Shown piece after piece: positions 4,375 through 62,247 of a stretch of 64,000 bases of DNA. Source of the DNA: Dendrobates tinctorius (Eukaryota). Made by a program: the position numbers and the translations under genes. The DNA is taken from contig NW_027361688.1 in the NCBI RefSeq assembly GCF_039654945.1, positions 1,550,001 to 1,614,000 on the forward strand. Direction: 5' to 3'. Below the pieces are notes generated by a model, which saw only the letters and a program-made list of their open reading frames with translations, was not told the DNA's origin and ran no database searches. How positions within the stretch are numbered: the stretch's first letter is position 1; the number at the start of each line of letters is the position of its first letter.

Positions 4375-4375
4375 T

Positions 4376-4386: not shown

Positions 4387-4402
4387 CCGGGTCTGGCTGG
4401 CA

Positions 4403-32180: not shown

Positions 32181-32222
32181 TCAGCTCTTGTGGGGACGGT
32201 GTGGGTGGCTCTTAGAAGAGCC
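32181..32222 (-). terminator. Histone 3' stem-loop + HDE (H2A copy 1)
   Basis: GGCTCT-TCTA-AGAGCC-ACCCA then CAAGAGCTG. Confidence 0.95.
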
Positions 32223-32260: not shown

Positions 32261-33365
<1,105 letters not shown>

Positions 33366-33396: not shown

Positions 33397-33437
33397 GGCT
33401 CTTCTAAGAGCCACCCACCCCGTCTACATCAGAGCTG
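33397..33437 (+). terminator. Histone 3' stem-loop + HDE (H2B copy 1)
   Basis: GGCTCTTCTAAGAGCC-ACCCA...CAGAGCTG. Confidence 0.95.
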
Positions 33438-34730: not shown

Positions 34731-35160
34731 ACTCACATAGTGAGGAGTCTACAGCTCTCCTCAGCCTGACAGGAGCCGCCGCCATGACACCACGTGTTAC
34801 ACTGAGGAGAAGAAAGAGCGCGAGAAACTATCAGCCGTTGGGCGGGAATTTCATATTCAGTGCTCAGCCAATCAGCACTCAGTAGGGCTATAGCTCCGCC
34901 CACAGGGTCACTTCCCCGCAGACACTCAGTGTTAACCCTTCAGTGGCCGATGTTTCCGGCTCCCGCAGAGCAGAGTGCAGCCATCCAGGCACAGCGCGGT
35001 CACCAGCCCCTCCCCCAGCAGCAGGAGCTGCGGCTTCTCCTCACATGTGGGCGGAGCACAGAGCTGTTGGGGGTTTTGAATTTCCCGCACTTTTTCCTGT
35101 CATTTTCCCGCTTTTATCTCCAGGACGTTACATCTAGTCACAGAGCAATGGCGGCGTGAG
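34731..35160 (-). promoter_or_regulatory. Repeated promoter/first-exon-like cassette, copy A
   Basis: GC box, CCAAT at 34868, E2F-like GGCGGGAA, CTCTTTC initiator-like tract, ATG 34785, GTGAGT donor 34736. Confidence 0.55.
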
Positions 35161-35739
35161 ACCGAGAGAAATCACCGAGATCATCACTGGTCAGGGGAGC
35201 AAAGAGAGGACTAGGATGCGGAGACAGGCTGGGGCAGCGGAGGAGAGAACAGGGGACAAAAAAAAATGTAACCAGGGGTAAATCAGATCATAACTCATAT
35301 GAGGAAATTATATGGAAATAAATAGAATAAAGGGAACAGAAAAAAATCATACCCTTAATGGGACCAGCAGGACGACACATGGACATTGCCAGCTACAGTG
35401 GGCGAGGAGTAATGGTGGGGGGCATAGGAGTTTGGTGGTTCATGCATTTTGTACCTTTGATTTATCACTTTTTTCTCTACGCTTCATTTCCCCATTTAAA
35501 ACAGTAGCACACAAACAGCCCCAGCTCTGATGTAGACGTATCTATCAGTATGTGGGGGCGATATTACTATATGTTGTTTGGTTACATCAGTATATGAAGA
35601 GCAGTATATGGACGGTAAACATCATTGTCTTATACAGAGCTATATAGCAGTTCTGCATCTCCCTGCTGCTCATCTTGCCCCATCTCTCTCCCCTGTCCTC
35701 TATATCAGACCCAATCTCTGCCTCCTATCAACACAGTGT

Positions 35740-35780
35740 TCAGCTCTGATGTAGACGGGGTGGTGGCTCTTAGAAGAGCC
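35740..35780 (-). terminator. Histone 3' stem-loop + HDE (H2B copy 2)
   Basis: Stem-loop 35765-35780, HDE CAGAGCTG. Confidence 0.93.
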
Positions 35781-35811
35781 TTTGGGTTGTGGGTGCAGAG
35801 CACAGAGCAGA

Positions 35812-36915
<1,104 letters not shown>

Positions 36916-36953
36916 GCGCTGCCACCGACCCCGTATCATCCACACAACCCAAA

Positions 36954-36995
36954 GGCTCTTCTAAGAGCCACCCACACCGTCACCACAAGAGCTGA
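36954..36995 (+). terminator. Histone 3' stem-loop + HDE (H2A copy 2)
   Basis: GGCTCTTCTAAGAGCC, CAAGAGCTG. Confidence 0.95.
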
Positions 36996-38150
36996 CGCCG
37001 CTGATCTCTGGTGTGAGCTGTATTTTACACCAAACACTAATGTAAATGATAAAAAAAATCCCATCACTATTAAACTATAGACACTAACTATTGTGCTGTA
37101 AACAGCTTAGTGCTTGTAGCCTCTGCCTATAAAAAGCTTTAAACTACCAAATACTGCTTTACATCATCCATATACTGAGGAATGTTCCCCCATATAGTGC
37201 TGTATATACTCTGTCAACACATTTTGTTGAATATGCCCACATGGCTTTATACATCCACTGTATAGTGTATGCAGCACTATATGGTGAGTACACAACGATG
37301 CGTTCACCCCTCACATTTGCCATCAGCAGAGACTCACCGACTAATGTTCCAGCAATCTGAGAGCTCCCGCGATTCAAAATTGTTTATTCAAAGTGGATTA
37401 AACCTTGTACATGAATGAGAATATGATCTGAGGGAGGATATTGTGTTTCTAATCTGATGTTCCCTTGTTCGTAATCATATTTTCACTGATTGACCTGATG
37501 CAATCCATTGTGAATGAAAATCAGTGTGGAACACCTGATAAAGTATACAGCAGCATATGGAGGGGTAGAGGGCACTGTCACCCTACCCCTGCTCTGATTT
37601 AGTCTTAAATATCCTCCTTAATCTGAACCTCCCTCTTATCCAGGACTTGTGCTGTGCCAGTTTCCTGGAATGCACTACCCAGAATGAGCTGATTGGTACC
37701 CAGCCTCCACATTGTGTGGTTTGCAAATATCTCTTTATAGAGACTAATCACCTTATTTCATTAATCTAACTCTGCCCTCCCCCTTATTTTTCCTTAGTCG
37801 GTCCCTCTTATTCATCTGTCTCCACATCCTCCATGCACCCAATAGCACTTGGTCACTGTAGTTACACACATACTGGCTGAGTGCACTGAACGAGCACATT
37901 CTTCTCATTGTGTCCACCTGTTTCCGTATAGATTGTGAGCAGGGCTCGCACTCCCGGAACTGCTAGTTTGTAATATCTTTACATTGTAAAGTGCTGCCGA
38001 ATATATGTTAGTGCTATAGAAATAACATTCTTATTGTTATACCCCCTATAAAGCTTACTATGGTAATCTATTACTATATACCTCCACATAAATCATTACA
38101 GCAATATGATGCGGTATACCGCACTATAGTGCTGAATATATTACATATTC

Positions 38151-38262
38151 ACTCACGGCCTGAGAGCCGCCGCATGTTACACCCAGGAGAACAAAGAGCG
38201 GGAAGGTATCAGCCGTGTGAGGGAATTTCATCCTCAGCACTCAGTAGTGCTATGGCTCCGGC
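38151..38262 (-). promoter_or_regulatory. Repeated cassette, copy B (diverged; downstream of H3)
   Basis: cagcactcagtagtgctatggctccg core, ggaatttca, tgttacac, ATG 38175, GTGAGT donor 38156. Confidence 0.5.
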
Positions 38263-38529
38263 ATCAGGACAAGGTGAGGAGCCCTGGATGTAACAGTTCC
38301 CTGGGTAGCTGCATCTAGAGAAAGATTTCCTATACAAGATAATTACATCTCTGCACTTTATATTGATGTCAAATTAACCCTTTTTGCTCCTCAGGCACAC
38401 AATAAACTAAGTTTAGTTTATGAATTATTTCCATTAGTGAAACTCGCAACCAATAAAAGATAGCCCATCTCCACAGTACACATTGGAGGCTATTGACACA
38501 AAGACCCAGTGCAGGATCCGGATAGTTTA

Positions 38530-38575
38530 GGCATTGGCTCCTTAGTGGGGGAATTTGGTGGCTCTGAGAAGAGCC
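38530..38575 (-). terminator. Histone 3' stem-loop (H3) with weak HDE
   Basis: GGCTCT-TCTC-AGAGCC-ACCAA at 38560-38575; HDE AAGGAGCC. Confidence 0.9.
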
Positions 38576-38605: not shown

Positions 38606-39070
<465 letters not shown>

Positions 39071-39517
39071 TTATACTCATGGGATCGCTCTCATTGGTTT
39101 ACGTGAAACACACCCCTTATACTCCATTGGCTGTGTGCAACCAATCATTATGCAGGAGACGCTCAGCACAACTCCCAGTAATCTCGTTGTTCCCTCCTCC
39201 ATGAAGTGCTGCTGGGTATCCGCAGTTCACACTGGTCACAGGCTGCCATAATGCAGGAGAAGGTCACATCATGTCTACAGGAGGCTTCTGCAGCAGCGGC
39301 CTCTGATGACGCTTTACTTCCATATCCCTGTACACTGCTCTTTATAGTGAAGCCCCCTCATCATCATCACCACAGATCCCCCCCCAATCCTCACATAGCG
39401 TCCCACATCCAGACACAGGATGTGAGAGGGAAATGATCACCTGTCAGTAACATGAAAGCTCTGCCCCTATAAACACTATAATGGCGCTGATGACGGAATC
39501 AGAGGGTGAAACTTGGA

Positions 39518-40674
39518 CACTGATCACACAGCTCTGCCGGGACAAGGTGGTGGCACTGATCACACAGCTCTGCCGGGACAAGGTGGTGACACTGATCACA
39601 CAGCTCTGCCGGGACAAGGTGGTGGCACTGATCACACAGCTCTGCCGGGGCAAGGTGGTGGCACTGATCACACAGCTCTGCCGGGACAAGGTTGTGGCGC
39701 TGATCACACAGCTCTGCCGGGACATGGTGGTGGCACTGATCACACAGCTCTGCCGGGACATGGTGGTGGCACTGATCACACAGCTCTGCCATTACAGGGT
39801 GGTGGCACTGATCACACAGCTCTGCCGGGACATGGTGGTGGCACTGATCACACAGCTCTGCCATTACAGGGTGGTGGCACTGATCACACAGCTCTGCCGG
39901 GACATGGTGGTGGCACTGATCACACAGCTCTGCCGGGACATGGTGGTGGCACTGGTCACACAGCTCTGCCGGGACATGGTGGTGGCACTGGTCACACAGC
40001 TCTGCCATTACAGGGTGGTGGCACTGATCACACAGCTCTGCCGGGACATGGTGGTGGCACTGATCACACAGCTCTGCCGGGGCAAGGTGGTGGCACTGAT
40101 CACACAGCTCTGCCGGGACAAGGTTGTGGCACTGATCACACAGCTCTGCCGGGACATGGTGGTGGCACTGATCACACAGCTCTGCCGGGGCACGGTGGTG
40201 GCACTGATCACACAGCTCTACCGGGACAAGGTTGTGGCACTGATCACACAGCTCTGCTGGGACATGGTGGTGGCACTGATCACACAGATCTGCCATTACA
40301 GGGTGGTGGCACTGATCACACAGCTCTGCCGGGACATGGTGGTGGCACTGATCACACAGCTCTGCCGGGACATGGTGGTGGCACTGGTCACACAGCTCTG
40401 CCATTACAGGGTGGTGGCACTGATCACACAGCTCTGCCGGGACATGGTGGTGGCACTGATCACACAGCTCTGCCGGGGCAAGGTGGTGGCACTGATCACA
40501 CAGCTCTGCCGGGACAAGGTTGTGGCACTGATCACACAGCTCTGCCGGGACATGGTGGTGGCACTGATCACACAGCTCTGCCGGGGCAAGGTGGTGGCAC
40601 TGATCACACAGCTCTGCCGGGACAAGGTTGTGGCACTGGTCACACAGCTCTGCCATTACAGGGTGGTGGCACTG
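39518..40674 (-). repeat. 36-bp minisatellite (~32 copies) derived from a histone 3'-processing signal
   Basis: Minus-strand unit TCAGTGCC-ACCAC-CATGTCCCGG-CAGAGCTGTG-TGA, continuous with the stem-loop at 40668-40683. Confidence 0.92.
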
Positions 40675-40763
40675 AGAAGAGCCTCTGTGGGAGAACAGGG
40701 CAGCTTAATCTTATTTCTCGGCAGGGGCTTCTTGGCTTTTGCTGCCTTCTTAGTCACCTTCTT
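40668..40763 (-). pseudogene. H1: Histone H1 3' remnant (C-terminal codons, 3' UTR, mutated stem-loop)
   Basis: KKVTKKAAKAKKP, then after a 1-nt shift AEK-TAA (40711); GGCTCTTCTCAGTGCC-ACCAC; the upstream part is replaced by satellite-like DNA. Confidence 0.75.
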
Positions 40764-41019: not shown

Positions 41020-42030
41020 TCACCCCCCATGTGGTGCTGTATATCGCCATATAGTGTCACCACCCATGTGGTGCTGTATATCGCCATATAGTGTCACCCC
41101 CCATGTGGTGCTGTATATCACCATATAGTGTCACGCTCCATGTGGTGTTGTATATCGCCATATAGTGTCACCACCCCATGTGGTGCTGTATATTGCCATA
41201 TAGTGTCACCCCCCATGTGGTGCTGTATATCGCCATATAGTGTCACCCCCATGTGGTGCTGTATTTCGCCATATAGTGTCACCCCCATGTGGTGCTGTAT
41301 ATCGCCATATAGTGTCACCCCCCATGTGGTGCTGTATATCGCCATATAGTGTCACCCCCCATGTGGTGCTGTATATCGCCATATAGTGTCACCCTCCAGG
41401 TGGTGCCGTATATCGCCATATAGTGTCACCCCCATGTGGTGCTGTATATCGCCATATAGTGTCACCCCCCACGTGGTGCCGTATATCGCCATATAGTGTC
41501 ACCCCCCACGTGGTGCCATATATCGCCATATAGTGTCACCCCCCACGTGGTGCCGTATATTGCCATATAGTGTCACCCTCCAGGTGGTGCCGTATATCGC
41601 CATATAGTGTCACCCCCATGTGGTGCCGTATATCGCCATATAGTGTCACCCCCCATGTGGTGCTGTATATCGCCATATAGTGTCACCCCCCCATGTGGTG
41701 CTGTATATCGCCATATAGTGTCACCCCCCCATGTGGTGCTGTATATCGCCATATAGTGTCACCCCCCATGTGGTGCTGTATATCGCCATATAGTGTCACC
41801 CCCCATGTGGTGCTGTATATCGCCATATAGTGTCACCCCCCATGTGGTGCTGTATATCGCCATATAGTGTCACCCCCCCATGTGGTGCTATATATCGCCA
41901 TATAGTGTCACCCCCATGTGGTGCTGTATATCGCCATTTAGTGTCACCCCCCATGTGGTGCTGTATATCGCCATATAGTGTCACCCCCCCATGTGGTGCT
42001 GTATATCGCCATATAGTGTCACCCTCCATC
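41020..42030. repeat. 36-38-bp satellite (gtgtcacccccc atgtggtgctgtatatcgccatata)
   Basis: About 27 units; length varies with the C-run. Confidence 0.95.
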
Positions 42031-42189
42031 CATAGTGCTGGATACAGGATATCACGCCTTATACACTGAATATCGGGCTGTATTCCTGGTTATGATGCGG
42101 TCTGTGCCCAAATACTACAATACTCCCTCCATATAGTGCTGTATACGGCCACATAGCGCTATATGATGTTTCCCTCCACACAGCGCTGA

Positions 42190-42432
42190 GCACCACGTGT
42201 TACACTGAGGAGAACAAGGAGCGCGAGAAACTATCAGCCGTTGGGCGGGAATTTCATATTCAGTGCTCAGCCAATCAGCACTCAGTAGGGCTATGGCTCC
42301 GCCCACAGGGTCACTTCCTGGAAGACACTCAGTGTTAACCCTTCAGTGGCCGATGTTTCCGACTCCCATAGAGCAGAGCAGACTGCAGCCATCGGGCACA
42401 GCGCGGTCACCAGCCCCTCCCCCAGCAGCAGA
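42190..42432 (-). promoter_or_regulatory. Repeated cassette, copy C
   Basis: Close match to 34787-35023. Confidence 0.55.
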
Positions 42433-42751
42433 AGCAAATCACTGATCATCATTGGGAATGTCTGAGGAGCAAAGGGTTATATCTTGTTGTTTACCATGAT
42501 ATAGCGTTATATACCTTCATATAGTGCTATATATCCCCCATATCCTGCTGTGTACCATCATACACCGTTTTATCTATTTTATATATAAGGTGTAGAAAAG
42601 CCGGAGGCTTGGATGGAATCCTACCAGAAATGCTGAGGTACAGCCCACCAGAAATACAGGCTGCAATGGTTAAACTGTTCAATATTGTGCTAAGTGCCGG
42701 CTACTTCCTTGTACGTGGAACCAAGGCCTCATCACACCCATCCACAAGAAT

Positions 42752-43089
42752 AAAGGATGGAATCTCCAGCGCTGGACTTCAGTTAAAAATACATCATTTA
42801 TTGTAAATTCTTAAAATCGAACAGAAAAAAGTGTGGATAAGGACATACAGGCAGATGGGGTCTCTGGTGGTCTCCAACCAACGCGTTTCGACCTAGAGGG
42901 TCTTACTCATGGTTCATCAATACAATAAATGATGTATTTTTAACTGAAGTCCAGCGCTGGAGATTCCATCCTTTATTTTGCTTCAGTCAACACCCCTGAT
43001 CAAGGTGACTCCGTGCGCAGGAGGATTATGGATCGCAACCGAGACTGGTGAGCTGACCTCCCTTCATTTTCCCTATCCTTCTATAATTA
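42752..43089. mobile_element. Penelope-like insertion with inverted repeat and hammerhead-like motif
   Basis: catccacaagaat duplicated at 42739 and 43090; inverted arms about 42749-42805 and 42920-42977; minus strand UGAGUAA-GACC(loop)GGUC-GAAA-CGCG at 42878-42912. Confidence 0.7.
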
Positions 43090-44466
43090 CATCCACAAGA
43101 ATGGGGACAGGTACGACCCAGCCAACTACAGAGGAATATGTGTCAGCAGCAACCTGGGAAAACTGTTCAACAGCATCCTGAACAAGAGGATCCTCAGTTT
43201 CCTCACTGAGCACAACGTCCCCAGCAAGAGCCAAGCAGGCTTCATGCCAAACCACCGCACTACTGAACACATCTACACCCTGCACAGCCTCATTCAGAGA
43301 CACGTCCACAATACAAAGAACGGGAAGATATACGCCTGTTTCGTGGACTTTAAAAGGCCTTTGATTCGGTGTGGCACCCAGACTTATCCCTGAAATTACT
43401 GGAGAGCGGAATAGGAGGAAAGACCTACGATGTTATGAAAAGCTCCTACACCGAGAACCTCTGCAGTGTGAGTGTGAGCGGCAGAAGAACGGCCTATTTC
43501 CAGCAGAGCCGGGGAGTCAGACAAGGCTGCAGCCCAAGCCCAACGCTCTTCAACATTTACATCAACGAGCTGGTTACCGCTCTGGAATCTTCCACAGCAC
43601 CAGGTCTCACCTTCCATGACGCGCAGGTGAAATTCCTGCTGTATTCAGATGACCTGCTGCTTCTGGCCCCAACCGAGAAAGGCCTCCAAGACAACCTGAA
43701 AATCTTAGAGAAATTCAGCTCCACCTGGGCTCTACCGGTCAACCTAAAGAAAACCAACATCATGGTGTTCCAGAAGAGAAAGAGAAAATCAGACCAGCAC
43801 CCTTCATTTATCCTCAACAACTGCGCCCTTACAGGAACGGACAAATATACCTACCTGGGCCTAGAGATTCACTGGTCAGGGAGTTCAAACAAGCCATAGA
43901 GACCCTGAAAGATAAGGCCTGCAAAACCTATGCCATCCGAAAGAAACTCTACCATCTGAAGCCACCAGTGAGGGTCTTGTTAAAAATCTTCGACTCTATC
44001 ATCGCCCCAATCCTCCTGTATGGCAGCGAAATCTGGGGTCCTCACACCTACCCAGACTGGTCAAGGTGGGATTCCAGCCCAACAGAAATATTCCACCTGG
44101 AATTCTGCAAGCACCTTCTCAAAGTCCATCGGAGCACCTCCAACAGCGCTTGCCGGGCCGAGCTGGGCAGATTCCCTCTACACCTAACGGTCCTAAAGAG
44201 GGCACTGTCATTCCGGGCTCACCTACAAAGGAGCAATCCAAGCTCCCATCACCATAAAGCCCTGACACATGTAGGTGAAACAGAAAAACCAGGACCCTTG
44301 GAACAGCCCACCCAAACCCAACCTGACCAGAACACCAATCACAACAACCTGACAAAAGCCGGAATCAGGAAGATGGTAGACGAAGGCCAGGAGAGGTACG
44401 TAAGTGACTGGAAGAACGACATCATCAGCTCACAGAAACCATGTACCGGAGTCTACAGAGAGACTA

Positions 44467-46018
44467 CAGTCATGGCCAAAAGTTTAGAGAATGACACAAA
44501 TATTATATTTTCACATGATCTGCTGCCCTCTGGTTTTTATGTGTGTTTGTCAGATGTTGTTATCACATACAGAAATATAATTGCAATCATATTTTGAGTA
44601 ACAAAAGGTTATATTGACAGAATGAGATAATACAGCAAGTCAATATTTGCAGTGTTGACCCTTCTTCTTCAGGACCGCAGCAATTCTCCCTGGCATGCTC
44701 TCAATTAACTTCTGGATCAAATCCTGACTGATAGTAGTCCATTCTTGCAAAATCAATGCTTTTATTTTGTCTGAATTTGAAGGTTTTTGTTTGTCCACCC
44801 GTCTCTTGATGATTGACCACAAGTTCTCAATGGGATTAAGATCTGGGGAGTTTCCAGGCCGTGGTCCCAAAATCTCTATGTTTTGTTCCCTGAGCCATTT
44901 AGTTATCACCTTTGCTTTATGGCAAGGTGCTCCATCATGTTGAAAAAGGCATTGATGATCGCCAAACTGCTCTTGGACGGTTGGGAGAAGTTGCTCTTGG
45001 AGGACATTCTGGTACCATTCTTTATTCATGGCTGTGTTTTTAGGCAAGACTGAGAGAGAGCCCATTCCCTTGGCTGAGAAGCAACCCCACACATGAATGG
45101 TTTCAGGATGCTTGACAGTTGGCATGAGACAAGACTGGTGGTAGCGCTCACCTGGTCTTCTCCGAATAAGCCATTTTCCAGATGTCCCAAACAATCGAAA
45201 AGGGGATTCATCAGAGAAAATGACTTTACCGCAGTCCACTCCCTGTACCTCTTGCAGAATATCAGTCTGTCCATGATGTTTTTTTCTGGAGAGAAGTGGC
45301 TTCTTTGCTGCCCTCCTTGAGACCAGGCCTTGCTCCAAGAGTCTCCGCCTCACAGTGCGTGCAGATGCACTCACACCTGCCTGCTGCCATTCCTGAGCAA
45401 GCTCTGCACTGCTGGTAGCCCGATCCCGCAGCTGAAACACTTTTAAGAGACGGTCCTGGCGCTTGCTGGTCTTTCTTGGGCGCCCTGGAGCCATTTTGGC
45501 AACAAGGGAACCTCTCTCCTTGAAGTTCTTGATGATGCGATAGATTGTTGACTGAGGTGCAATCTTTCTAGCTGCGATCCTCTTCCCTGTTAGGCCATTT
45601 TTGTGCAGTGCAATGATGACTGCATGTGTTTCTTTAGAGATAACCATGGTTAACAGAAGAGAAACAATGATGCCAAGCACCAGCCTCCTTTTAAAGTGTC
45701 CAGTGGTGTCATTCTTACTTAATCATAACAGATTGCTCCATTAACACAGGTGTGGGTGTTGATGAGGACAGGGCTGGAGATCAATCACTGAAACGATGTT
45801 AGCTGGTCCTTTTAAGGCAGGGCTGCAATGATGTTGAAATGTGTTTTGGGGGATAGAGTTAATTTTCTAGGCAAATATTGACTTTGCAAGTAATTGCTGT
45901 TAAGCTGATCACTCTTTATAACATTCTGGAGTATATGCAAATTGCCATTAGAAAAAATGAAGCAGTAGACTTTGTAAGAATTAGTATGTGTCATTCTCTA
46001 AACTTTTGGCCATGACTG
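44467..46018 (-). mobile_element. Tc1/mariner transposon with DD35E spacing
   Basis: TIR cagtcatggccaaaagtttagagaatgac, TA TSD. Confidence 0.95.
44640..45647 (-). pseudogene. DD35E transposase with compensating frameshifts
   Basis: GRPRK, FSDES, QHDGA-35-NPIE; the expected RLIFCKRYREWT segment lies in another frame. Confidence 0.85.
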
Positions 46019-46557
46019 TACAGACTGGCCCCATATCTGGAGAAAATCCCTGACCCCAGAGACCGCAAGATCCTGAGCCGGTATAGACTCAGTGCCCACA
46101 GTCTGGCCATCGAATCCGGCCGACACAGGCAGAGCTACAATCCTAGGGAGCAAAGACTGTGCCAACACTGTGACCAGGAGGCCCTGGAGAATCGACACCC
46201 ACTACACTGCCCCAAATACTCAGCAGTGAGGGACACTCACTTCAGGAGACTCTCACATCTCTTCCCGGATTTCATCACCATGAAGGAGGAAGAGAAAACA
46301 TATATCCTGCTGGGGGAAGAAGAGAGAGCAGTGGAGATAGCAGCGCAATATGTGAGCCAATGTAATAGACTGCGAGAAAAACAGCCATGATATGCCATGG
46401 ACTTCTGTGGCCCCCACCCTGGATCTGCCCCCATCCACCTTTCCTACAGCCCCTACCCAACATCCCTACAGTCCCTATCCCTATTCCCTCTTGTACACTT
46501 GCTTTGGCAAAACTAATGTGTATTTAGTCCTGCCAATAAAGCTTCTTTGAATTGAAT

Positions 46558-47480
46558 ATCCTGCTGTATACCTCCATATAGTGCTATATCCCCTTCATAT
46601 CCTGATGTATAGCTCCATATAGTGCTATATCCCCTTCATATCCTGATGTATACCGCCATATAGTGCTGCATACACTCATGTAGCGCTACATACCTTCATA
46701 TACTGCTGTATATATCCATATAGTGCTCTATACTCCATAAACTGCTATATACCCTCCATATACTGCTGTATCCCCCATATAGTACTATATACATTCCATA
46801 TCCTGCTGTATACCCCATATACTACTATATACCCTCCATATCCTGCTGTATACACCATATAGTGCTTTATACTCTCTATATCCTGCTGTATACCCGCATA
46901 TAGTGCTATATACCCTCCATATCCTGCTGTATACCCCGATATAGTGCTATATACCCTCCATATCCTGCTGTATACCCGCATATAGTGCTATATACCCTCC
47001 ATATCCTGCTGTATACCCGCATATAGTGCTATATACCCTCCATATCCTGCTGTATACCCCCATATAGTGCTATATACCCTAAATATCCTGCTGTATACCC
47101 CCATATAGTGCTATATACCCACCATATCCTGCTGTATACCCCCATATACTGCTATATACCCTACATATCCTGCTGTATACCCCCATATAGTGCTTTATAC
47201 TCTCTATATCCTGCTGTATACCCGCATATAGTGCTATATACCCTCCATATCCTGCTGTATACCCCCATATAGTGCTATATACCCTCCATATCCTGCTGTA
47301 TACCCGCATATAGTGCTATATACCCTCCATATCCTGCTGTATACCCCCATATAGTGCTATATACCCTCCATATCCTGCTGCATACCCCCATATAGTGCTA
47401 TATACTCTCCATATCCTACTGTCTAACCCCATATAGTGCTATATACCCTCCATATCCTGCTGTATACCCCCACATAGTGT
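46558..47480. repeat. ~20/41-bp satellite
   Basis: Tandem atatagtgctatataccctccatatcctgctgtataccc units. Confidence 0.95.
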
Positions 47481-47746
47481 CGTGTTCTTGTAAACAATTA
47501 CAGGGATGCATCAACGCAGAAGATGAGGACACTAATAGGTTAATCAAATATTTCTTGGATAAATTAAGAGTAAGTGGTGCTGATACCTACTAGTGGCCCT
47601 ACCACCTGCAGTGCGTCACAGTCATTATCTGTCCCGTTCCCGCCATCTCTGGCACTCTGTAGGTAATAGGAGCCGTAATATCGGCCTATGATACCACGCC
47701 GTTAGGCCCTAATCGCTTATTGATTAGTCACTTTCCACAACTGTTA

Positions 47747-48033
47747 GGCTATGTGCACACACTGCAGAATCACCTGCGGGTTTTTCCCCGCGGAACCGCA
47801 GGTAAAGTGACCTGCGGTTTCACACCTCTACTATGTTAAAGGTGTGAAACCACAGCGGAATCCGCAGAAACAATTGACATGCTGCGGTTTATAAACCGCA
47901 GCAAAACCACGCTGAAAAAAACGCAACGTGAGCACTGCGGTTTTGAAAACCCATAGGGTTACATGGTACTGTACCATGTCTGCGGAACTGCTGCGGTTCC
48001 GCAGGGCCAAAACCGCAGCGTGTGCACATAGCC
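47747..48033. mobile_element. Harbinger-type MITE
   Basis: TIR ggctatgtgcacac, TTA TSD. Confidence 0.8.
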
Positions 48034-49039
48034 TTACGCTGTCCAACTTCTCCCTTGAAGCATGGCCCCGGTCTCCCGTGTATCGAACGTGTACTTTGGA
48101 AATCAGAGCTCACAGGATCGTCCCCTCGTCACTGGCCTGGTCACCTCTGCTCCCTCGGATTACTTAGCTCATCTCCGGTTCTGGCTACCCAGCTCTGGTA
48201 ACTCATCCCCCCCAAAACCCCTTCCCCCTGTTTCTGGTTACTTGTCTCTTCGCTATATATGGTGGCCATAAACCAAACTTACGCTTCTCTAGCTTTTTTA
48301 TTCCTGCTTTTAATTGATTCTTTAATAAAAATTGTTGCTTTTCTCCTGATTGTGGTTTGTGGGATCTCTTCATTGTCCTGTAAGGACTCATATGGGACTA
48401 GTTTTGTACTTGATGTTAGACGTGCTCCGTTGATATTTGAACATTTATTGACTTACCGTAGGTATAAATTTTTGCAAAAAAAAGTTTAAAGTGAATAACT
48501 TGAATAATAAACTCTGTTTTTTTTCTATGTTCTCTGGTTTGCTTGTGTTCCCATCATGACTAGTGAATAGGAAAGATTGTGGGTGGGAGGACAAGAAGAC
48601 GCAGGTGACGAGAAGTGCCTGAGCTCCATTGGCTCAGCTGCCTTTATAGACGCCTTCCTCAATGTAGCGGTCGTATAGTCCTATACTACATTCCACATTC
48701 ACACAAGCTGCAACAAGAATTCCTAGGAACACTTGTTTCCCAATTATCAACTTTTTTTTTTGAAGAGGCCACCAATCATCCAACGAACAAGGAAAATCTA
48801 TTATCAGGCAAAATGATTTTTTAACCCCTTTCCAACCTTGACATATAGTTACACCTAAGGTCACCTCCCCCTATTTGCTGCGGGCTGAGCACACAACTTT
48901 TCCGGCACATGTCATCTGATTTCCCCTAATAGTCGCGAATGGAATCCCGATCCACCTTTGGCTGCTAACATGTTAAATGCCACTGTCAATCTCTGACATC
49001 GTCATTTAACATGCTCGCGCCGGAAGCGCATCGCATATT

Positions 49040-49282
49040 ATTATATATTTATATAGCGCCAATTATTCTATGGCGCTTTACATGTGAAAAGGGGAAATAT
49101 AGACAAGAATAATAAACATGTGTAAGACAAGGGACACACAAGTACATAAGGAGAGGAGACCCTGCCCGCGAGGGCTCACAGTCTACAGGGAGGGTGAGGA
49201 TAGAGTAGGAGAGGGTAGAGCTGGTTGTGTGGTGGTTCAGTAGACCGAGGATCATTGCAGGCTGTAGGCTTGCCGGAACAGG
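49040..49282 (-). mobile_element. L2-type 3' tail fragment
   Basis: Reverse complement of 55130-55370; tgtagactgtgagccctcgcgggcaggg core. Confidence 0.75.
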
Positions 49283-49729
49283 TCACTAATACCACCTATC
49301 GACAAATGTGTCACATGACCTTGTGTTGGTATGACAAGCCGGGATCTGCAGGAAACAACTGTGGATGTCATTTCCGGACAGCTATGAGTACCACCCAGCG
49401 GTCGGCGATCACAGCAAGTGAGCATTTCTGCTACTCAGCGCAGGGCTTCAGCCGTGCTCTGTGCAGCTCAGGCAATCAGATGATTGCAGCTTCTAGTGTC
49501 CCATGGAGACTGTGAAACCAAGTGTTAATTAAAAAAAAAAAAAAAAATAGCCTGTTTGTTGGGCTCTGTATGCATGTGTTGTGACAGTGAAACAGCCGCG
49601 ACACATGCAGCTGCGGCGCCGACCAGCTGATTATCGGGAGCGCTCCAGGTGACCGAAGCAGCTATTTGGGATCATCACGTATCCAAAGCTAGCCGATCAA
49701 CCCTATTATTGACTCATTTAATAAAAGCG

Positions 49730-51164: not shown

Positions 51165-51460
51165 CTCCCAGCCTGACAAGATCAGATCCACCGCCGCCAT
51201 CCTGACACCACATGTTACAGAGAACAAACAGCAGAAGAAACCATCAGCCCATGTGCACAGCCAATCAGCACTCAGTAGGGCTATGGCTCCGCCCACAGGC
51301 AGCACCAGATTACTCCCCCCCAGGCCCTCAGTGTTAACCCATTAGTGCCTGCAATGTATCCAGCTGCAGCAGCACAGGCTGCAATCATCCCAGCACAGGA
51401 CTATCAGCAGCCCCTTCCCCCTCTCCCTCCCCAGGAGCTGTAGCTTCTCCTCAGAAGATG
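51165..51460 (-). promoter_or_regulatory. Repeated cassette, copy D, directly downstream of H4
   Basis: cagccaatcagcactcagtagggctatggctccgcccacagg identical to copy C; ctcagtgttaaccc; ATGGCGGCG. Confidence 0.55.
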
Positions 51461-52000: not shown

Positions 52001-52934
52001 GTTAGTGATTTTGAATTTCTCGCTCATTTTTTTCTCCCCTTCTACTGGGATGACACTAAAAATAGTCAGGAACCTGATTCCTCTCCCCGGTGACATCCTG
52101 CTCGGAGTAATTACAATGTGAGAGCCGGACCTGCAGATCAATCATTGACAATTATAGTGCAAGATTCTATACATAGAACAAAAGTCAAAATAAGCAACTC
52201 AAAATACCAAGGCCTCGCTCCCAGAATAGATGCATAAATGCAGAATTTGCATAAATTGATGGAATGCTCCCATAGATATAAAACACAAAGAAAAAGATGG
52301 ATTACATAAACCACCAAGAGGATAATAAAATCCAAACATTTGATTTAATCAAAATTACCTGCACATAATATGAGCCATATACAGGATAGTGGAACCAAAG
52401 AGAGGACTAGGATGCGGAGACAGGCTGGGGCAGCGGAGGAGAGAACAGGGGACAAAAAAAATGAAACCAGGGGTAGATCAGAACTCATATGAGGAAATTA
52501 TATGGAAATAAATAGAATAAAGGGAACAGAAAAAAATCATACCCTTAATGGGACCAGCAGGACGACACATGGACATTGCCAGCTACAGTGGGCGAGGAGT
52601 AATGGTGGGGGGCATAGGAGTTTGGTGGTTCATGCATTTGGTACCTTTGATTTATCACTTTTTTCTCTACGCTTCATTTCCCCATTTAAAACAGTAGCAC
52701 ACAAACAGCCCCAGCTCTGATGTAGACGTATCTATCAGTATGTGGGGGCGATATTACTATATGTTGTTTGGTTACATCAGTATATGAAGAGCAGTATATG
52801 GACGGTAAACATCATTGTCTTATACAGAGCTATATAGCAGTTCTGCATCTCCCTGCAGCTCACCTTGCCCCATCTCTCTCCCCTGTCCTCAATATCAGAG
52901 ACCCAATCTCTGCCTCCTATCAACACAGTGTTAT

Positions 52935-52976
52935 TCAGCTCTGATGTAGACGGGGTGGGTGGCTCTTAGAAGAGCC
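52935..52976 (-). terminator. Histone 3' stem-loop + HDE (H2B copy 3)
   Basis: Stem-loop 52961-52976, CAGAGCTG. Confidence 0.93.
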
Positions 52977-53007
52977 TTTGGGTTGTGGGTGCAGAGCACA
53001 GAGCAGA

Positions 53008-54111
<1,104 letters not shown>

Positions 54112-54150
54112 GCGCTGCCACCGACCCCCGTATCATCAACACAACCCAAA

Positions 54151-54192
54151 GGCTCTTCTAAGAGCCACCCACACCGTCACCACAGGAGCTGA
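54151..54192 (+). terminator. Histone 3' stem-loop + HDE (H2A copy 3)
   Basis: GGCTCTTCTAAGAGCC; HDE CAGGAGCTG. Confidence 0.93.
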
Positions 54193-54432
54193 CGCCGCTG
54201 ATTGTGATGTTCTGGTCTGTGTGTACTGATGTTATACAGAATCTCAGCCATAGAACAGAGTATACAGGAGCCGTAGCTGCACCTGGCAGTGGGTATAATC
54301 CTGTCACTATTGGGCTGGTACATTGGGACTGATGATGGTTAATCTGCAGTGACTAGCACTTAGTGGTCCGCTATCGGGTTTTACACCCTCCTCTCCCCTA
54401 TCCTCCATGTCCTGTAGTTGGAGGTGTGATCA

Positions 54433-54473
54433 GTGGTGACTCTGAAAAGAGCCTTTGTGGAAGGACAGGGCAC
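54433..54473 (-). pseudogene. Orphan histone stem-loop with H1-like 3' UTR
   Basis: CAAA-GGCTCT-TTTC-AGAGTC-ACCAC; the preceding tgccctgtccttccaca resembles the UTR of the H1 remnant; no CDS upstream. Confidence 0.7.
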
Positions 54474-55372: not shown

Positions 55373-55734
55373 ACTGTATCAGTTATAGTTATTACTATTT
55401 TTGGGGGAAGAGCATTCCAGAAAATTGGTGCAATTCATGAAGTTGGAAGTGGGAGGTATGGATTAGTGCGGATATTAGTTGAAAGTCTCTTGCGGAGTGT
55501 AATGTGCGGGAAGGTCGATATACAGTAATGAGGGGGCTGCACTGTGTACATCGGTATAGTGCAGGAATCTCTTCATATAGAGCTATATACTGATGTGTAT
55601 ACCAAGATAGTGCTGTTTTGTCCACCCATAGTACCAAACACCCCTATCTAGTGCTGTATATGTCCTTACAATGAAGTTATATTGTGCTATATATCCCTAT
55701 AGTGTTACATATCACTATAGTACAGTATTCCTCC

Positions 55735-56531
55735 ATATCACTTCCCATGTGGTGCTGTATATCTATCGCCATATAGTGTCACCCTCCATGTGGTGCCGTA
55801 TATCTCCATATAGTGTCACCCCCCATGTGGTGCTGTATATCGCCATATAGTGTCACCCCCCATGTGGTGCTGTATATCGCCATATAGTGTCACCCTCCAG
55901 GTGGTGCCGTATATCGCCATATAGTGTCACCCCCATGTGGTGCTGTATATCGCCATATAGTGTCACCCCCCACGTGGTGCCGTATATCGCCATATAGTGT
56001 CACCCCCCACGTGGTGCCATATATCGCCATATAGTGTCACCCCCCACGTGGTGCCGTATATTGCCATATAGTGTCACCCTCCAGGTGGTGCCGTATATCG
56101 CCATATAGTGTCACCCCCATGTGGTGCCGTATATCGCCATATAGTGTCACCCCCCATGTGGTGCTGTATATCGCCATATAGTGTCACCCCCCCATGTGGT
56201 GCTGTATATCGCCATATAGTGTCACCCCCCCATGTGGTGCTGTATATCGCCATATAGTGTCACCCCCCATGTGGTGCTGTATATCGCCATATAGTGTCAC
56301 CCCCCATGTGGTGCTGTATATCGCCATATAGTGTCACCCCCCATGTGGTGCTGTATATCGCCATATAGTGTCACCCCCCCATGTGGTGCTATATATCGCC
56401 ATATAGTGTCACCCCCATGTGGTGCTGTATATCGCCATTTAGTGTCACCCCCCATGTGGTGCTGTATATCGCCATATAGTGTCACCCCCCCATGTGGTGC
56501 TGTATATCGCCATATAGTGTCACCCTCCATC
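55735..56531. repeat. 36-38-bp satellite, second array
   Basis: Same unit and variant order as 41305-42030. Confidence 0.95.
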
Positions 56532-56690
56532 CATAGTGCTGGATACAGGATATCACGCCTTATACACTGAATATCGGGCTGTATTCCTGGTTATGATGCG
56601 GTCTGTGCCCAAATACTACAATACTCCCTCCATATAGTGCTGTATACGGCCACATAGCGCTATATGATGTTTCCCTCCACACAGCGCTGA

Positions 56691-56933
56691 GCACCACGTG
56701 TTACACTGAGGAGAACAAGGAGCGCGAGAAACTATCAGCCGTTGGGCGGGAATTTCATATTCAGTGCTCAGCCAATCAGCACTCAGTAGGGCTATGGCTC
56801 CGCCCACAGGGTCACTTCCTGGAAGACACTCAGTGTTAACCCTTCAGTGGCCGATGTTTCCGACTCCCATAGAGCAGAGCAGACTGCAGCCATCGGGCAC
56901 AGCGCGGTCACCAGCCCCTCCCCCAGCAGCAGA
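56691..56933 (-). promoter_or_regulatory. Repeated cassette, copy E
   Basis: Duplicate of copy C. Confidence 0.55.
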
Positions 56934-57090
56934 AGCAAATCACTGATCATCATTGGGAATGTCTGAGGAGCAAAGGGTTATATCTTGTTGTTTACCATGA
57001 TATAGCGTTATATACCTTCATATAGTGCTATATATCCCCCATATCCTGCTGTGTACCATCATACACCGTTTTATCTATTTTATATATAAG

Positions 57091-60000: not shown

Positions 60001-61058
60001 CAACAAGGGAACCTCTCTCCTTGAAGTTCTTGATGATGCGATAGATTGTTGACTGAGGTGCAATCTTTCTAGCTGCGATCCTCTTCCCTGTTAGGCCATT
60101 TTTGTGCAGTGCAATGATGACTGCATGTGTTTCTTTAGAGATAACCATGGTTAACAGAAGAGAAACAATGATGCCAAGCACCAGCCTCCTTTTAAAGTGT
60201 CCAGTGGTGTCATTCTTACTTAATCATAACAGATTGCTCCATTAACACAGGTGTGGGTGTTGATGAGGACAGGGCTGGAGATCAATCACTGAAACGATGT
60301 TAGCTGGTCCTTTTAAGGCAGGGCTGCAATGATGTTGAAATGTGTTTTGGGGGATAGAGTTAATTTTCTAGGCAAATATTGACTTTGCAAGTAATTGCTG
60401 TTAAGCTGATCACTCTTTATAACATTCTGGAGTATATGCAAATTGCCATTAGAAAAAATGAAGCAGTAGACTTTGTAAGAATTAGTATGTGTCATTCTCT
60501 AAACTTTTGGCCATGACTGTACAGACTGGCCCCATATCTGGAGAAAATCCCTGACCCCAGAGACCGCAAGATCCTGAGCCGGTATAGACTCAGTGCCCAC
60601 AGTCTGGCCATCGAATCCGGCCGACACAGGCAGAGCTACAATCCTAGGGAGCAAAGACTGTGCCAACACTGTGACCAGGAGGCCCTGGAGAATCGACACC
60701 CACTACACTGCCCCAAATACTCAGCAGTGAGGGACACTCACTTCAGGAGACTCTCACATCTCTTCCCGGATTTCATCACCATGAAGGAGGAAGAGAAAAC
60801 ATATATCCTGCTGGGGGAAGAAGAGAGAGCAGTGGAGATAGCAGCGCAATATGTGAGCCAATGTAATAGACTGCGAGAAAAACAGCCATGATATGCCATG
60901 GACTTCTGTGGCCCCCACCCTGGATCTGCCCCCATCCACCTTTCCTACAGCCCCTACCCAACATCCCTACAGTCCCTATCCCTATTCCCTCTTGTACACT
61001 TGCTTTGGCAAAACTAATGTGTATTTAGTCCTGCCAATAAAGCTTCTTTGAATTGAAT
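57091..61058 (+). mobile_element. Duplicate of the 42590 LINE (Penelope-like insert at 57253-57590)
   Basis: Copy at +14501. Confidence 0.85.
58968..60519 (-). mobile_element. Duplicate DD35E Tc1 transposon (transposase 59141-60148)
   Basis: Copy at +14501 with the same insertion site. Confidence 0.95.
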
Positions 61059-61981
61059 ATCCTGCTGTATACCTCCATATAGTGCTATATCCCCTTCATA
61101 TCCTGATGTATAGCTCCATATAGTGCTATATCCCCTTCATATCCTGATGTATACCGCCATATAGTGCTGCATACACTCATGTAGCGCTACATACCTTCAT
61201 ATACTGCTGTATATATCCATATAGTGCTCTATACTCCATAAACTGCTATATACCCTCCATATACTGCTGTATCCCCCATATAGTACTATATACATTCCAT
61301 ATCCTGCTGTATACCCCATATACTACTATATACCCTCCATATCCTGCTGTATACACCATATAGTGCTTTATACTCTCTATATCCTGCTGTATACCCGCAT
61401 ATAGTGCTATATACCCTCCATATCCTGCTGTATACCCCGATATAGTGCTATATACCCTCCATATCCTGCTGTATACCCGCATATAGTGCTATATACCCTC
61501 CATATCCTGCTGTATACCCGCATATAGTGCTATATACCCTCCATATCCTGCTGTATACCCCCATATAGTGCTATATACCCTAAATATCCTGCTGTATACC
61601 CCCATATAGTGCTATATACCCACCATATCCTGCTGTATACCCCCATATACTGCTATATACCCTACATATCCTGCTGTATACCCCCATATAGTGCTTTATA
61701 CTCTCTATATCCTGCTGTATACCCGCATATAGTGCTATATACCCTCCATATCCTGCTGTATACCCCCATATAGTGCTATATACCCTCCATATCCTGCTGT
61801 ATACCCGCATATAGTGCTATATACCCTCCATATCCTGCTGTATACCCCCATATAGTGCTATATACCCTCCATATCCTGCTGCATACCCCCATATAGTGCT
61901 ATATACTCTCCATATCCTACTGTCTAACCCCATATAGTGCTATATACCCTCCATATCCTGCTGTATACCCCCACATAGTGT
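61059..61981. repeat. ~20/41-bp satellite (duplicate)
   Basis: Copy at +14501. Confidence 0.95.
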
Positions 61982-62247
61982 CGTGTTCTTGTAAACAATT
62001 ACAGGGATGCATCAACGCAGAAGATGAGGACACTAATAGGTTAATCAAATATTTCTTGGATAAATTAAGAGTAAGTGGTGCTGATACCTACTAGTGGCCC
62101 TACCACCTGCAGTGCGTCACAGTCATTATCTGTCCCGTTCCCGCCATCTCTGGCACTCTGTAGGTAATAGGAGCCGTAATATCGGCCTATGATACCACGC
62201 CGTTAGGCCCTAATCGCTTATTGATTAGTCACTTTCCACAACTGTTA

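Follow-up and report, generated by a model that had tools for sequence, protein, structure and literature searches.

How does a histone cluster come to hold 32 tandem copies of what resembles a histone mRNA 3′-processing signal, and is such an array a relic or a functional element? The question is raised by an array upstream of an intact H3 gene in a 64-kb window, i.e., the whole stretch of DNA that was analyzed. The canonical 3′ signal of histone pre-mRNAs is composed of a stem-loop, an ACCCA motif, and an HDE and is served by SLBP and the U7 snRNP (PMC7026596). On balance, we favor the explanation that the array is a minisatellite from the 3′-processing region of a histone gene, probably H1, and a neutral relic of slippage and unequal exchange, with a family in other organisms.

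Structure of the array and variation among its units

The array consists of the following elements:

39524..40675, minus strand: 32 full 36-bp units with 13 distinct unit sequences
39516..39523, minus strand: partial 33rd unit, TCAGTGTC, which contains the downstream TCAGTG of a direct repeat and continues into the unique flank
40643..40652, minus strand: first HDE-like element, CAGAGCTGTG, 15 nt past the stem-loop

TRF detected a period-36 array at 39518-40675 with 32.2 copies, 92% matches, and 0% indels, which bears out the preliminary description of about 32 tandem units of 36 bp. Slicing of the minus strand from 40675 yielded 32 in-register units plus the partial 33rd unit. The units are thus arranged head-to-tail and in register, and their length is in the minisatellite range of 10-100 bp. 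A 23-mer across the unit junction had 32 matches with up to 3 mismatches, compared with none in 100 shuffles, and at the same stringency it did not match anywhere in the window outside of the array.

On the minus strand, each unit is made up of TCAGTGCC, which corresponds to the 3′ arm of the stem, ACCACC, a 9-nt variable spacer, the HDE-like CAGAGCTGTG, and TGA. The previously described succession of stem-loop 3′ arm, cleavage site, spacer, and HDE-like element was seen in every sliced unit, and the spacer types were all present as listed; the spacer of unit 1 is of the A-type (CCTGTAATGG). In all units, the AGAGCTGT core is located 15 nt past the stem arm and at the native distance from ACCACC.

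The order of units along the array is ABCDBCDADDAEFGDBCDADDDADADDBCHHH. Three-unit BCD blocks occur four times, and the identity between units peaks at lags 3 and 11-12, as would be expected of unequal exchange. TCAGTG is found at both ends of the array. Both the higher-order blocks of variants and the short direct repeat that bounds the array are typical of minisatellites.

At least 14 mutational events have occurred across the units. The spacer was the sole enriched part, with 8 events versus 3.5 expected (P=0.01). For the HDE-like 10-mer, 2 events compare with 3.9 expected, and its variability is not significantly below that of the other parts (P=0.21). The six singleton changes are distributed 2/2/2 on the stem arm, the spacer, and the HDE-like part, and one of them strikes the HDE-like core, which reads AGATCTG in this unit. 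The HDE had been called nearly invariant. This is correct as a description, because CAGAGCTGTG varies in 2 of the 32 units, but statistically the element is not distinct from the other non-spacer parts. The suggested comparison of HDE and spacer substitutions therefore revealed an enriched spacer and no measurable protection of the HDE core.

Remnant of a dead histone gene at the array head

Upstream of the array, the end of a histone gene has been retained, and a second copy of the cluster contains a paralogous region:

40725..40763, minus strand: histone coding-end remnant, H1-like, with 13 Lys/Ala-rich codons (KKVTKKAAKAKKP); truncated upstream at 40763/40764
40684..40724, minus strand: 3′-UTR remnant; the final 17 nt (TGCCCTGTTCTCCCACA) share homology with the UTR that precedes the orphan stem-loop of copy 2
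40668..40683, minus strand: degenerate histone stem-loop GGCTCTTCTCAGTGCC (GGCTCT-TCTC-AGTGCC), with a U-U mismatch at the fourth stem pair
54438..54453, minus strand: orphan stem-loop GGCTCTTTTCAGAGTC of cluster copy 2, a paralogue of the one at the array head, with no Lys codons upstream and no array
54411..54435, minus strand: single degenerate inverted unit (CACTGATCACAC--CTC--CAACTACAGG), directly after the copy-2 orphan stem-loop

Read along the minus strand, the first unit starts within the 3′ arm of the degenerate stem-loop. A histone stem-loop was defined as a 16-nt element with a 6-bp stem, a UYUN loop, and a score at or above the Rfam Histone3 threshold. The element at the array head, which has one non-standard stem pair, scored 21.7 bits (E=0.0075) and thus stayed below the gathering score of 34, while the live stem-loops of H3 and H4 in the window reached 33.7 and 38.6 bits, respectively. 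The repeated units did not match Rfam Histone3 at all.

The regions 40663-40702 and 54433-54472 match at 85%. The alignment of the 3′-UTR remnant with the copy-2 UTR had a score of 24, which was reached by 0 of 1000 shuffles (11.1±2.0). The inverted unit of copy 2 had a local score of 26 (shuffles 10.9±2.1, 0/2000); it is A-like, and its AGAGCTG core is disrupted. The alignment of the copy-2 unit in sense orientation was not significant.

At the array head, the stem-loop is followed after 15 nt by CAGAGCTGTG, and this first HDE-like element is probably the parent gene's own HDE. In the H2B genes of the window, of which there are three, the distance from the stem-loop to CAGAGCTG is 16-17 nt, and the downstream element of the H2A genes is CAAGAGCTG. 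The unit core AGAGCTG is identical to the core of these H2A and H2B elements and has nearly equal spacing. The reported match to the HDEs of the neighboring H2B genes was thus confirmed for the AGAGCTG core, with a spacing of 15 nt versus 16-17 nt. Taken together, the decayed stem-loop at the head, the copy-2 paralogue, the AGAGCTG core at the right distance, and TCAGTG at the boundary point to a histone 3′ end as the origin, in agreement with the preliminary description. These comparisons make it well supported that the unit derives from a histone 3′-processing region, of which it spans the stretch between the stem-loop 3′ arm and the HDE, both included. As in other gene-derived satellites, the unit has its counterpart in a piece of a functional gene.

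The 13 Lys/Ala-rich codons make H1 a plausible parent gene. The remnant codons are the window's sole K/A/P-rich stretch besides the H2B N-termini. The array is not situated directly 3′ of an intact histone ORF, as 13 codons remain. An intact H1 gene was not found in the 64-kb window, and H1 was also absent from the gene lists at the nine places in the source genome for which the exact H2A protein is listed. The stop codon that had been noted after the H1 codons ("aaaTAAg") turned out to lie in another frame, as would suit a gene that is dead; the Lys frame is open until its first in-frame stop, a TAA within unit 1. From the proposed dead H1 gene, the dead histone end was thus verified, and the identity as H1, judged from 13 codons, is plausible. 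The UTR remnant is also weakly similar to the H2B UTR (P about 0.01-0.02, uncorrected). The HDE is of the H2B type as well, and H2B may instead have been the parent, but H1 is favored, and the remnant codons are not an H2B C-terminus.

We hypothesize that the single-copy ancestor had TCAGTG in a mutated stem 3′ arm and a second TCAGTG 36 nt downstream, which together would have formed a short direct repeat. Replication slippage between the two words would have duplicated the 36-nt segment, and the growth to 32 units may have come from unequal exchange, in blocks of one unit or of three units (108 bp). The second TCAGTG that this idea needs, already pointed out in the preliminary description, is indeed present 36 nt downstream at the array end. 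Such an origin would explain why the unit carries the fossil of a cleavage region and a U7 element (AGAGCTGT), without the stem-loop. Most likely, the array is a relic that lacks its parent gene at the locus; its evolution is most likely neutral, within a spacer of the histone cluster that is unusually prone to minisatellites. Minisatellites account for 11.8% of the window, with 8 arrays of at least 10 copies. Kinship of the unit with the window's 34-, 36-, 37-, 41-, 62-, and 116-bp minisatellites was considered and rejected, as none of the alignments reached significance (best P=0.017, uncorrected over 28 tests).

Pairing with U7, transcription, and alternative explanations

The 5′ region of mouse/human U7 (PMC7026596) was used as a proxy, from which toad U7 may differ. 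The window's own H2A and H2B cores (AGAGCTG) fit this proxy. The duplex of the unit with the proxy has 9 bp and -13.5 kcal/mol, and the pairing is weaker than that of the H2B elements (-15.3 to -18.9 kcal/mol) and the H2A elements (about -15) and stronger than that of H3/H4. The value represents the 5th percentile of 24,886 random 45-nt windows and is within the top 5-7%. The recommended pairing calculation, made with the mouse/human proxy, thus gave 9 bp only, and about 5% of random windows paired equally well. For histone pre-mRNA, it has been reported that processing is severely inhibited once the duplex is shortened to 9-10 bp, and that a strong HDE-U7 duplex is required where SLBP is dispensed with (PMC7026596). 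As the units have no stem-loop, they have no SLBP site. By prediction, the array RNA folds into less structure than its shuffles do (z=+2.3), and therefore, the sites would be accessible. If the minus strand is transcribed, each unit would be at most an SLBP-independent, weak U7 site.

Four features in the neighborhood are relevant for transcription:

38606..39016, minus strand: intact H3 gene, on the array strand, 502 nt downstream of the array
39067-39076, minus strand: TATA box of the H3 promoter, with CCAAT boxes between about 39095 and 39130
38560-38575, minus strand: H3 stem-loop
42200..42330, minus strand: module about 1.5 kb upstream, previously termed a "cassette", that contains a GC box, CCAAT, and E2F-like sites

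Judged from its motifs, the module at 42200..42330 is promoter-like and could drive transcription into arrays. The E2F-like word has further copies at 34840 and 56744.

None of the sampled array words were present in three cane-toad RNA runs, and run X15 contained no array contig; with runs of 50-60 million letters and with contigs as the material searched, absence is not implied. Among the DNA runs, the array flank is present in X1-X4 only, which all come from one sample, the probable source of the assembly. Unit-like contigs, with 85-99% likeness and a word depth of up to 166, were found in the libraries of two other organisms, and they fall on array units only. The RNA label of these libraries is a guess, and the contigs are strandless. 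If they are truly RNA, the unit family is transcribed somewhere. A neutral array had been expected to be private to the locus; with these contigs, the unit family is not private. The tabulated differences between species affect unit positions 9, 14, 16, 17, 21, 22, 23, and 33 and spare the AGAGCTGT core. Position 33 is an A in the contigs of the other organisms, so that Watson-Crick pairing with U7 reaches 9 bp. One loose-end unit of organism C lacks the core entirely. A metagenome scan with a conserved junction 24-mer yielded no matches.

One alternative explanation is that the array is a functional landing pad, i.e., that its minus-strand RNA offers 32 accessible HDE-like sites for binding of the U7 snRNP. 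Transcription would reach the array by read-through, starting in the promoter-like module upstream or, where H1 is still alive, at the H1 gene. The sites would then bring about fail-safe cleavage and termination, protecting the H3 promoter that follows 0.5 kb downstream, or they would concentrate or sequester U7 locally within the histone locus body. In this case, minus-strand 3′ ends should recur at 36-nt intervals, each about 10 nt upstream of AGAGCUGU. The AGAGCTGT core is indeed at its native distance from ACCACC throughout, but it is not significantly conserved, one unit has a core change, and the loose-end unit of organism C does without it. An unstructured state is predicted for the array RNA, but duplexes of 9-10 bp are processed poorly (PMC7026596), SLBP-independence calls for a strong duplex, an SLBP site is missing, and by its energy the duplex falls into the top 5-7% of random windows. 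Deep contigs that keep the core and have the better-pairing A at position 33 stem from two RNA-labelled libraries of other organisms. However, the label "RNA?" was guessed, about 3,000 genomic copies would give an equal depth in a low-coverage DNA library, and none were seen in the cane-toad RNA runs. There is a precedent for U7 acting via HDE-like motifs in repeats (PMC11417402), whereas at this locus the parent gene is dead and the unit at the sister locus is inverted and decayed. A functional landing pad is thus unlikely. We also give little credit to the proposal that bufonids have conserved, transcribed HDE arrays behind H1 as multivalent, SLBP-independent U7 pads and that the array in the window has outlived its H1. 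If true, such arrays would serve fail-safe cleavage and termination between closely packed histone genes and/or the seeding or buffering of U7 in the histone locus body. The U7 sponge or terminator of the preliminary description was neither supported nor refuted. So far, function is not supported because of the missing SLBP site, the 9-bp duplex, the unprotected core, and the decayed inverted sister unit; the absence of a cane-toad RNA contig is a weak negative in addition.

Alternatively, the satellite might be transcribed passively, e.g., by read-through from histone or spacer promoters, with the histone-derived sequence playing no part and without relevance for U7. Contigs in the RNA-labelled libraries of other organisms and the promoter-like module upstream on the same strand would fit, but the kind of run was guessed, the contigs have no strand, and the cane-toad runs contained none. 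Parallels exist in newt satellites next to histone genes, for which transcription by read-through is established (PMC5615363), and in PcP190, a gene-derived frog satellite that is transcribed (PMC11675491). At the array locus, passive transcription is indistinguishable from the neutral reading, and we regard it, too, as unlikely. Very improbable is a role of plus-strand RNA from H3 upstream antisense transcription, in which 32 copies of ACAGCUCU, the U7 5′-end word, could mask HDEs. The H3 promoter is 440-500 nt away from the array end and points away, and the unit contains ACAGCTCT on the plus strand, but only 8 nt are shared with U7 and the idea is purely inferential. Lastly, long ORFs (385, 428, and 431 aa) extend across the array, and it could be supposed that one of the three open frames encodes a protein of 12-residue repeats, e.g., AELCDQCHHxVP on the minus strand. 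However, 36 nt are 12 codons, and any stop-free unit therefore yields long ORFs, and no promoter, start, or splice context is present. The 385-aa ORF gave one spurious match to a multihaem cytochrome and a 72-aa piece gave none, and this reading was rejected as having practically no chance of being correct.

Comparison with known systems

Compared to the canonical replication-dependent histone 3′ signal, the array head is a decayed copy, and the units keep the stem 3′ arm, ACCACC, and the U7-complementary core, with a spacing as in the window's H2A and H2B genes. In contrast, the units lack the stem 5′ arm and the loop, the duplex has 9 bp while good substrates have roughly 13-16 bp, and the array consists of 32 repeats that are detached from any gene.

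Human LTR12 repeats and lincRNAs contain U7-regulated HDE-like motifs; those of LTR12 are described as perfect matches and act through NF-Y at the level of transcription (PMC11417402). Both cases have matches to the U7 5′ end in repeated DNA outside of histone genes; in the array, however, the match comprises 8-9 nt, is in tandem, and is known from sequence alone.

PcP190 of hyloid frogs, which is derived from 5S rDNA, is likewise a tandem repeat, and its unit goes back to a part of a multigene-family member that is functional and transcribed. PcP190 has conserved and hypervariable blocks, occurs in several species, and has been reported to be transcribed (PMC11675491, PMC4201667). Conserved and variable blocks are also found in the array unit. 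The two differ in that PcP190 stems from 5S rDNA, has a unit of about 190 bp, and forms chromosomal blocks, whereas the array stems from a histone 3′ signal, has a unit of 36 bp, and extends over 1.2 kb.

In newts, satellites are interspersed with histone clusters and are transcribed by read-through on lampbrush loops (Diaz et al. 1981, as cited in PMC5615363). The array is likewise located in an amphibian histone cluster, with histone-type units upstream of it on its own strand, which by analogy makes read-through transcription plausible. As far as we know, the unit of the newt satellites does not stem from a histone processing signal.

Literature searches for histone-derived satellites or HDE arrays yielded no precedent. 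Thus, a tandem repeat born from a histone mRNA 3′-processing signal appears to be undescribed so far, and it would join the satellites already known to stem from functional parts of multigene families, such as PcP190 from 5S rDNA. If the family is transcribed, it would be a natural multimer of putative U7-binding sites inside a histone locus, and it would allow testing how far HDE-U7 pairing alone recruits the U7 snRNP, whether such pairing can terminate Pol II, and whether it contributes to the assembly of the histone locus body. If it is neutral, it would illustrate that a short direct repeat, generated by one point mutation in the stem-loop of a dead gene, can seed a minisatellite, and it would be a caution against inferring function from fossil motifs.

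Ordinary vertebrate minisatellites have units of 10-100 bp, show interspersion of variant repeats, and evolve by unequal exchange. The period, the copy number, the indel-free register, the higher-order variant blocks, and the boundary repeat of the array all fit this class, and seven other minisatellite arrays of such a kind are present in the same 64 kb. In contrast to ordinary minisatellites, the unit of this array has an identifiable functional ancestry.

The array and its histone-derived head

Tandem Repeats Finder resolved 39518-40675 into 32.2 copies with a period of 36, 92% matches and no indels. Cutting the minus strand from 40675 yields 32 in-register units with the consensus TCAGTGCC ACCACC ATGTCCCGG CAGAGCTGTG TGA and a partial 33rd unit, TCAGTGTC, which passes into unique sequence. 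At up to three mismatches, the 23-mer of the unit junction had 32 matches, none in 100 shuffles, and no site in the window outside the array. The array of about 32 copies of a 36-bp unit in the preliminary description was thus borne out. A coding-repeat reading was rejected. Rfam matches to a 'prion pseudoknot' on the plus strand (39938-39991, 40334-40387 and 39722-39773), far below threshold, were judged spurious and are due to the unit's CATGGTGGTGGC word.

The following elements, here called the head, lie directly upstream of the array:

40668-40683, minus strand: 16-nt hairpin GGCTCT-TCTC-AGTGCC
Between hairpin and codons, minus strand: UTR-like stretch of 41 nt
40725-40763, minus strand: 13 codons, KKVTKKAAKAKKP

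The head stem-loop, which has one non-standard stem pair, reached 21.7 bits (E=0.0075) with the Rfam Histone3 model, for which the gathering score is 34; the live stem-loops of the neighbouring H3 and of H4 reached 33.7 and 38.6 bits. The repeated units did not match this model, because they retain only the 3' arm of the stem. Only the H4 stem-loop passes the gathering score; the H3 stem-loop has the loop UCUC, and all six H2A/H2B stem-loops of the window (32207-32222, 33397-33412, 35765-35780, 36954-36969, 52961-52976 and 54151-54166) share the loop UCUA (GGCTCTTCTAAGAGCC) and are not among the matches that reach it. The 3' ends compare as follows:

H2B: stem-loop GGCTCTTCTAAGAGCC, 16-17 nt, then CAGAGCTG
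H2A, after the stem-loop: CAAGAGCTG
H3, after the stem-loop: AAGGAGCC
Array head: 15 nt after the stem-loop, then CAGAGCTGTG

The histone downstream element (HDE) at the array is of the H2B type, and the UTRs of the head and of H2B are weakly similar (P about 0.01-0.02, uncorrected). The 13 codons are the sole Lys/Ala/Pro-rich stretch in the window besides the H2B N-termini, and on them H1 is a plausible parent gene. H1 C-terminal codons followed by a stop had been proposed; the Lys/Ala-rich codons stood, and the stop did not, as the neighbouring 'aaaTAAg' is out of frame and the first stop in the lysine frame is a TAA within unit 1. This is what a dead gene would be expected to show. Because its stem-loop lies below the threshold (21.7 versus 34) and no ORF is attached, the array falls outside the family of histone 3'-processing signals in the functional sense. 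At this locus no gene remains for it to serve.

The sister locus and the growth of the array

The window is a histone cluster: three H2A-H2B pairs and single H3 and H4 genes lie among transposons and numerous minisatellites, and arrays occupy 11.8% of the 64 kb. The exact H2A protein occurs in assembly GCA_039654945.1 alone, given in PMC12822217 as that of Rhinella marina, the cane toad. Each H2B gene has a 128-nt N-masked stretch (33091-33218, 35959-36086 and 53155-53282). A Ty3/gypsy-type retrotransposon (3676-10957) has a 1358-aa gag-pol ORF (4454-8530), LTRs that are 98.6% identical (3676-4374 and 10260-10957), and a 34-bp, 24-copy minisatellite (8964-9776) between that ORF and the 3' LTR.

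The cluster is present in two partial copies, which match at 35200-37005 and 52396-54202 (about 98% identity) and at 41183-49499 and 55684-64000 (an 8.3-kb duplication, 99.6% identity). Between the matching blocks copy 1 is about 2.7 kb longer than copy 2, and the extra sequence holds H3 and the array. Judged by identity, the 8.3-kb duplication is much younger than the duplication of the H2A-H2B pair (about 98%) and the paralogy around the orphan stem-loops (about 85%). Within the 8.3-kb duplication lie minisatellites of 37 and 41 bp, a pair of reverse-transcriptase-like ORFs and a Tc1/mariner-like transposase ORF of 346 aa (44640-45680 and 59141-60181).

Copy 2 contains a paralogue of the head stem-loop:

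54438-54453, minus strand: orphan stem-loop GGCTCTTTTCAGAGTC

Its upstream UTR is homologous to that of the head (score 24, shuffles 11.1±2.0, 0/1000), and it is followed by CACTGATCACAC--CTC--CAACTACAGG (within 54411-54453, minus strand). The latter aligns with the antisense of the unit (score 26, shuffles 10.9±2.1, 0/2000), and no significant alignment was found in the sense orientation. Copy 2 therefore has one inverted, degenerate unit, in which four bases of the AGAGCTG core are gone. Its position beside the stem-loop indicates that the segment adjoined the stem-loop before the two copies diverged, and its orientation points to an inversion of about 29 bp relative to copy 1, directly after ACCAC. 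Inverted as it is, this unit cannot act as an HDE, and no function has preserved it at that place. The Rfam score and the paralogous stem-loop with its homologous UTR show that the head is a genuine, old, decayed histone 3' end, and the unit spans the 3' arm, the cleavage region and the HDE. Together with the type and distance of the HDE, they uphold the proposed origin of the unit from a histone 3'-processing signal.

TCAGTG occurs at both array boundaries, in the mutated stem arm of the head and in TCAGTGTC at the tail, and supplies the short direct repeat that the earlier idea of a slippage seed required. In the succession of unit types, ABCDBCDADDAEFGDBCDADDDADADDBCHHH, a block of three units, BCD, appears in four places, in one of them mutated to FGD, and the mean identity of units to one another has its peaks at lags 3 and 11-12. 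Such a pattern is characteristic of unequal exchange in which multi-unit blocks take part. Because unit 1, adjoining the stem-loop, has an A-type spacer (CCTGTAATGG) and the single unit of copy 2 is also A-like, the CCCGG types probably derive from an ancestral A type. A decaying H1 gene would have undergone slippage in its 3' flank, which seeded the minisatellite, and unequal exchange would then have expanded it.

Pairing with U7 and mutation within the units

The mouse/human U7 5' region, AAGUGUUACAGCUCUUUUAG (PMC7026596), was used as a stand-in for frog U7, and the H2A/H2B cores present in the window are compatible with it. The predicted duplexes were:

Array unit (each): 9 contiguous bp, -13.5 kcal/mol
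H2B elements: -15.3 to -18.9 kcal/mol
H2A elements: about -15 kcal/mol
H3 element: -10.0 kcal/mol
H4 element: -8.7 kcal/mol

Among 24,886 random 45-nt windows from the same sequence, the value of the unit falls at the 5th percentile, and 7% of the windows reach -13. According to PMC7026596, processing is severely impaired once the duplex is shortened to 9-10 bp, and a strong duplex is needed for processing independent of SLBP. The units have no SLBP site. Each unit is therefore predicted to be a weak U7 site at best. When folded, RNA of the head and five units has less structure than its shuffles (z=+2.3; 199/200 shuffles fold at least as well), and thus the 32 predicted sites would be exposed.

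The unit variants require at least 14 mutational events:

HDE-like 10-mer (unit positions 24-33): 2 observed, 3.9 expected, P=0.21 for two or fewer, at low power
Stem arm: 3 observed, 3.1 expected, not significant
Spacer (unit positions 15-23): 8 observed, 3.5 expected, P=0.01

The spacer is the only one of these parts to deviate from expectation. Its AAT/CCC block may be a single event, and it also holds the unit's only CpG. The six singleton, and thus young, changes fall twice each in the stem arm, the spacer and the HDE-like part, and include AGATCTG in the core. A nearly invariant HDE beside a variable spacer had been described; the variability of the spacer held, and protection of the HDE did not emerge from this low-power test. 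The unit is better described by a variable spacer than by a protected HDE.

Transcription, spread and competing readings

Two features bear on a possible terminator role:

Minus strand, the strand of the array: intact H3 gene, ATG 39016, TATA 39067-39076, CCAAT between about 39095 and 39130
42200-42330, minus strand: promoter-like module with GC box, CCAAT and E2F-like sites, about 1.5 kb upstream of the array

About 440 nt thus separate the end of the array from the H3 TATA box downstream, and a 37-bp minisatellite lies between the array and the promoter-like module. The cluster spacers carry five copies (34795-34906, 38175-38268, 42198-42309, 51265-51299 and 56699-56810) of a module of about 110 bp, all in one orientation, that combines a GC box and an inverted CCAAT with E2F-like words (AAATTCCCGCCC, TTTCTCGCGC); two of these copies lie shortly past the 3' ends of H3 and H4. 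The module resembles a cell-cycle-type promoter without a known gene.

DNA runs X1-X4, probably of the source sample, contain the unique flank adjoining the array. The sampled words were absent from three small RNA-labelled runs of the source organism (cane-toad), one of which, X15, had no contig on 40424-41017. Runs of organism B (X5-X8) contained 4-7% of the sampled words of 39017-39517, between array and H3 start, probably from conserved words of the H3 promoter or 5'UTR. Unit-like contigs were found in organisms C (X25 and X27) and D (X26), whose RNA label is guessed: 27, 20 and 2 contigs of 43-326 nt, strandless, 85-99% alike, found with a bias towards look-alikes of the array, and with a word depth of up to 166, a value that a low-coverage DNA library would equally give for a sequence present in about 3,000 genomic copies. 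They are confined to array units (40424-40653); upstream is almost empty, and the stem-loop, the UTR and the H1 remnant have no contig. At unit position 33 these contigs have A where the array has G, so that a G-U pair with U7 becomes A-U; the other listed differences are at positions 9, 14, 16, 17, 21, 22 and 23. Their loose ends hold more diverged units, one with AGAGATGT and one without the core altogether. Because of these contigs, the unit family appears to be private neither to this locus nor to one species, contrary to the privacy that the preliminary description had tied to neutrality.

We consider it fairly probable that the array is a neutral minisatellite, seeded by slippage in a decaying H1 3' flank, grown by unequal exchange and belonging to a bufonid family. 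A U7 landing pad or terminator, as the preliminary description had suggested, would have 32 predicted sites exposed in unstructured RNA at its disposal, but the 9-bp duplex, the lack of an SLBP site and the inverted, single, disrupted unit of copy 2 make it unlikely, and what is measurable here does not support it. Passive transcription that does not involve U7 is about equally doubtful, and a U7-like transcript from the plus strand is very improbable. In summary, the observation was confirmed and the origin supported, whereas the function was not.

Literature searches did not turn up any tandem repeat described as descending from a histone 3'-processing signal. Action of U7 outside histone genes has a precedent in the HDE-like motifs of human LTR12 repeats (PMC11417402). 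In its workings the array is like any ordinary minisatellite. It resembles in its gene-derived ancestry the frog satellite PcP190, which descends from 5S rDNA (PMC11675491, PMC4201667), and its setting recalls that of the newt satellites amid histone clusters, which are transcribed by read-through (PMC5615363).
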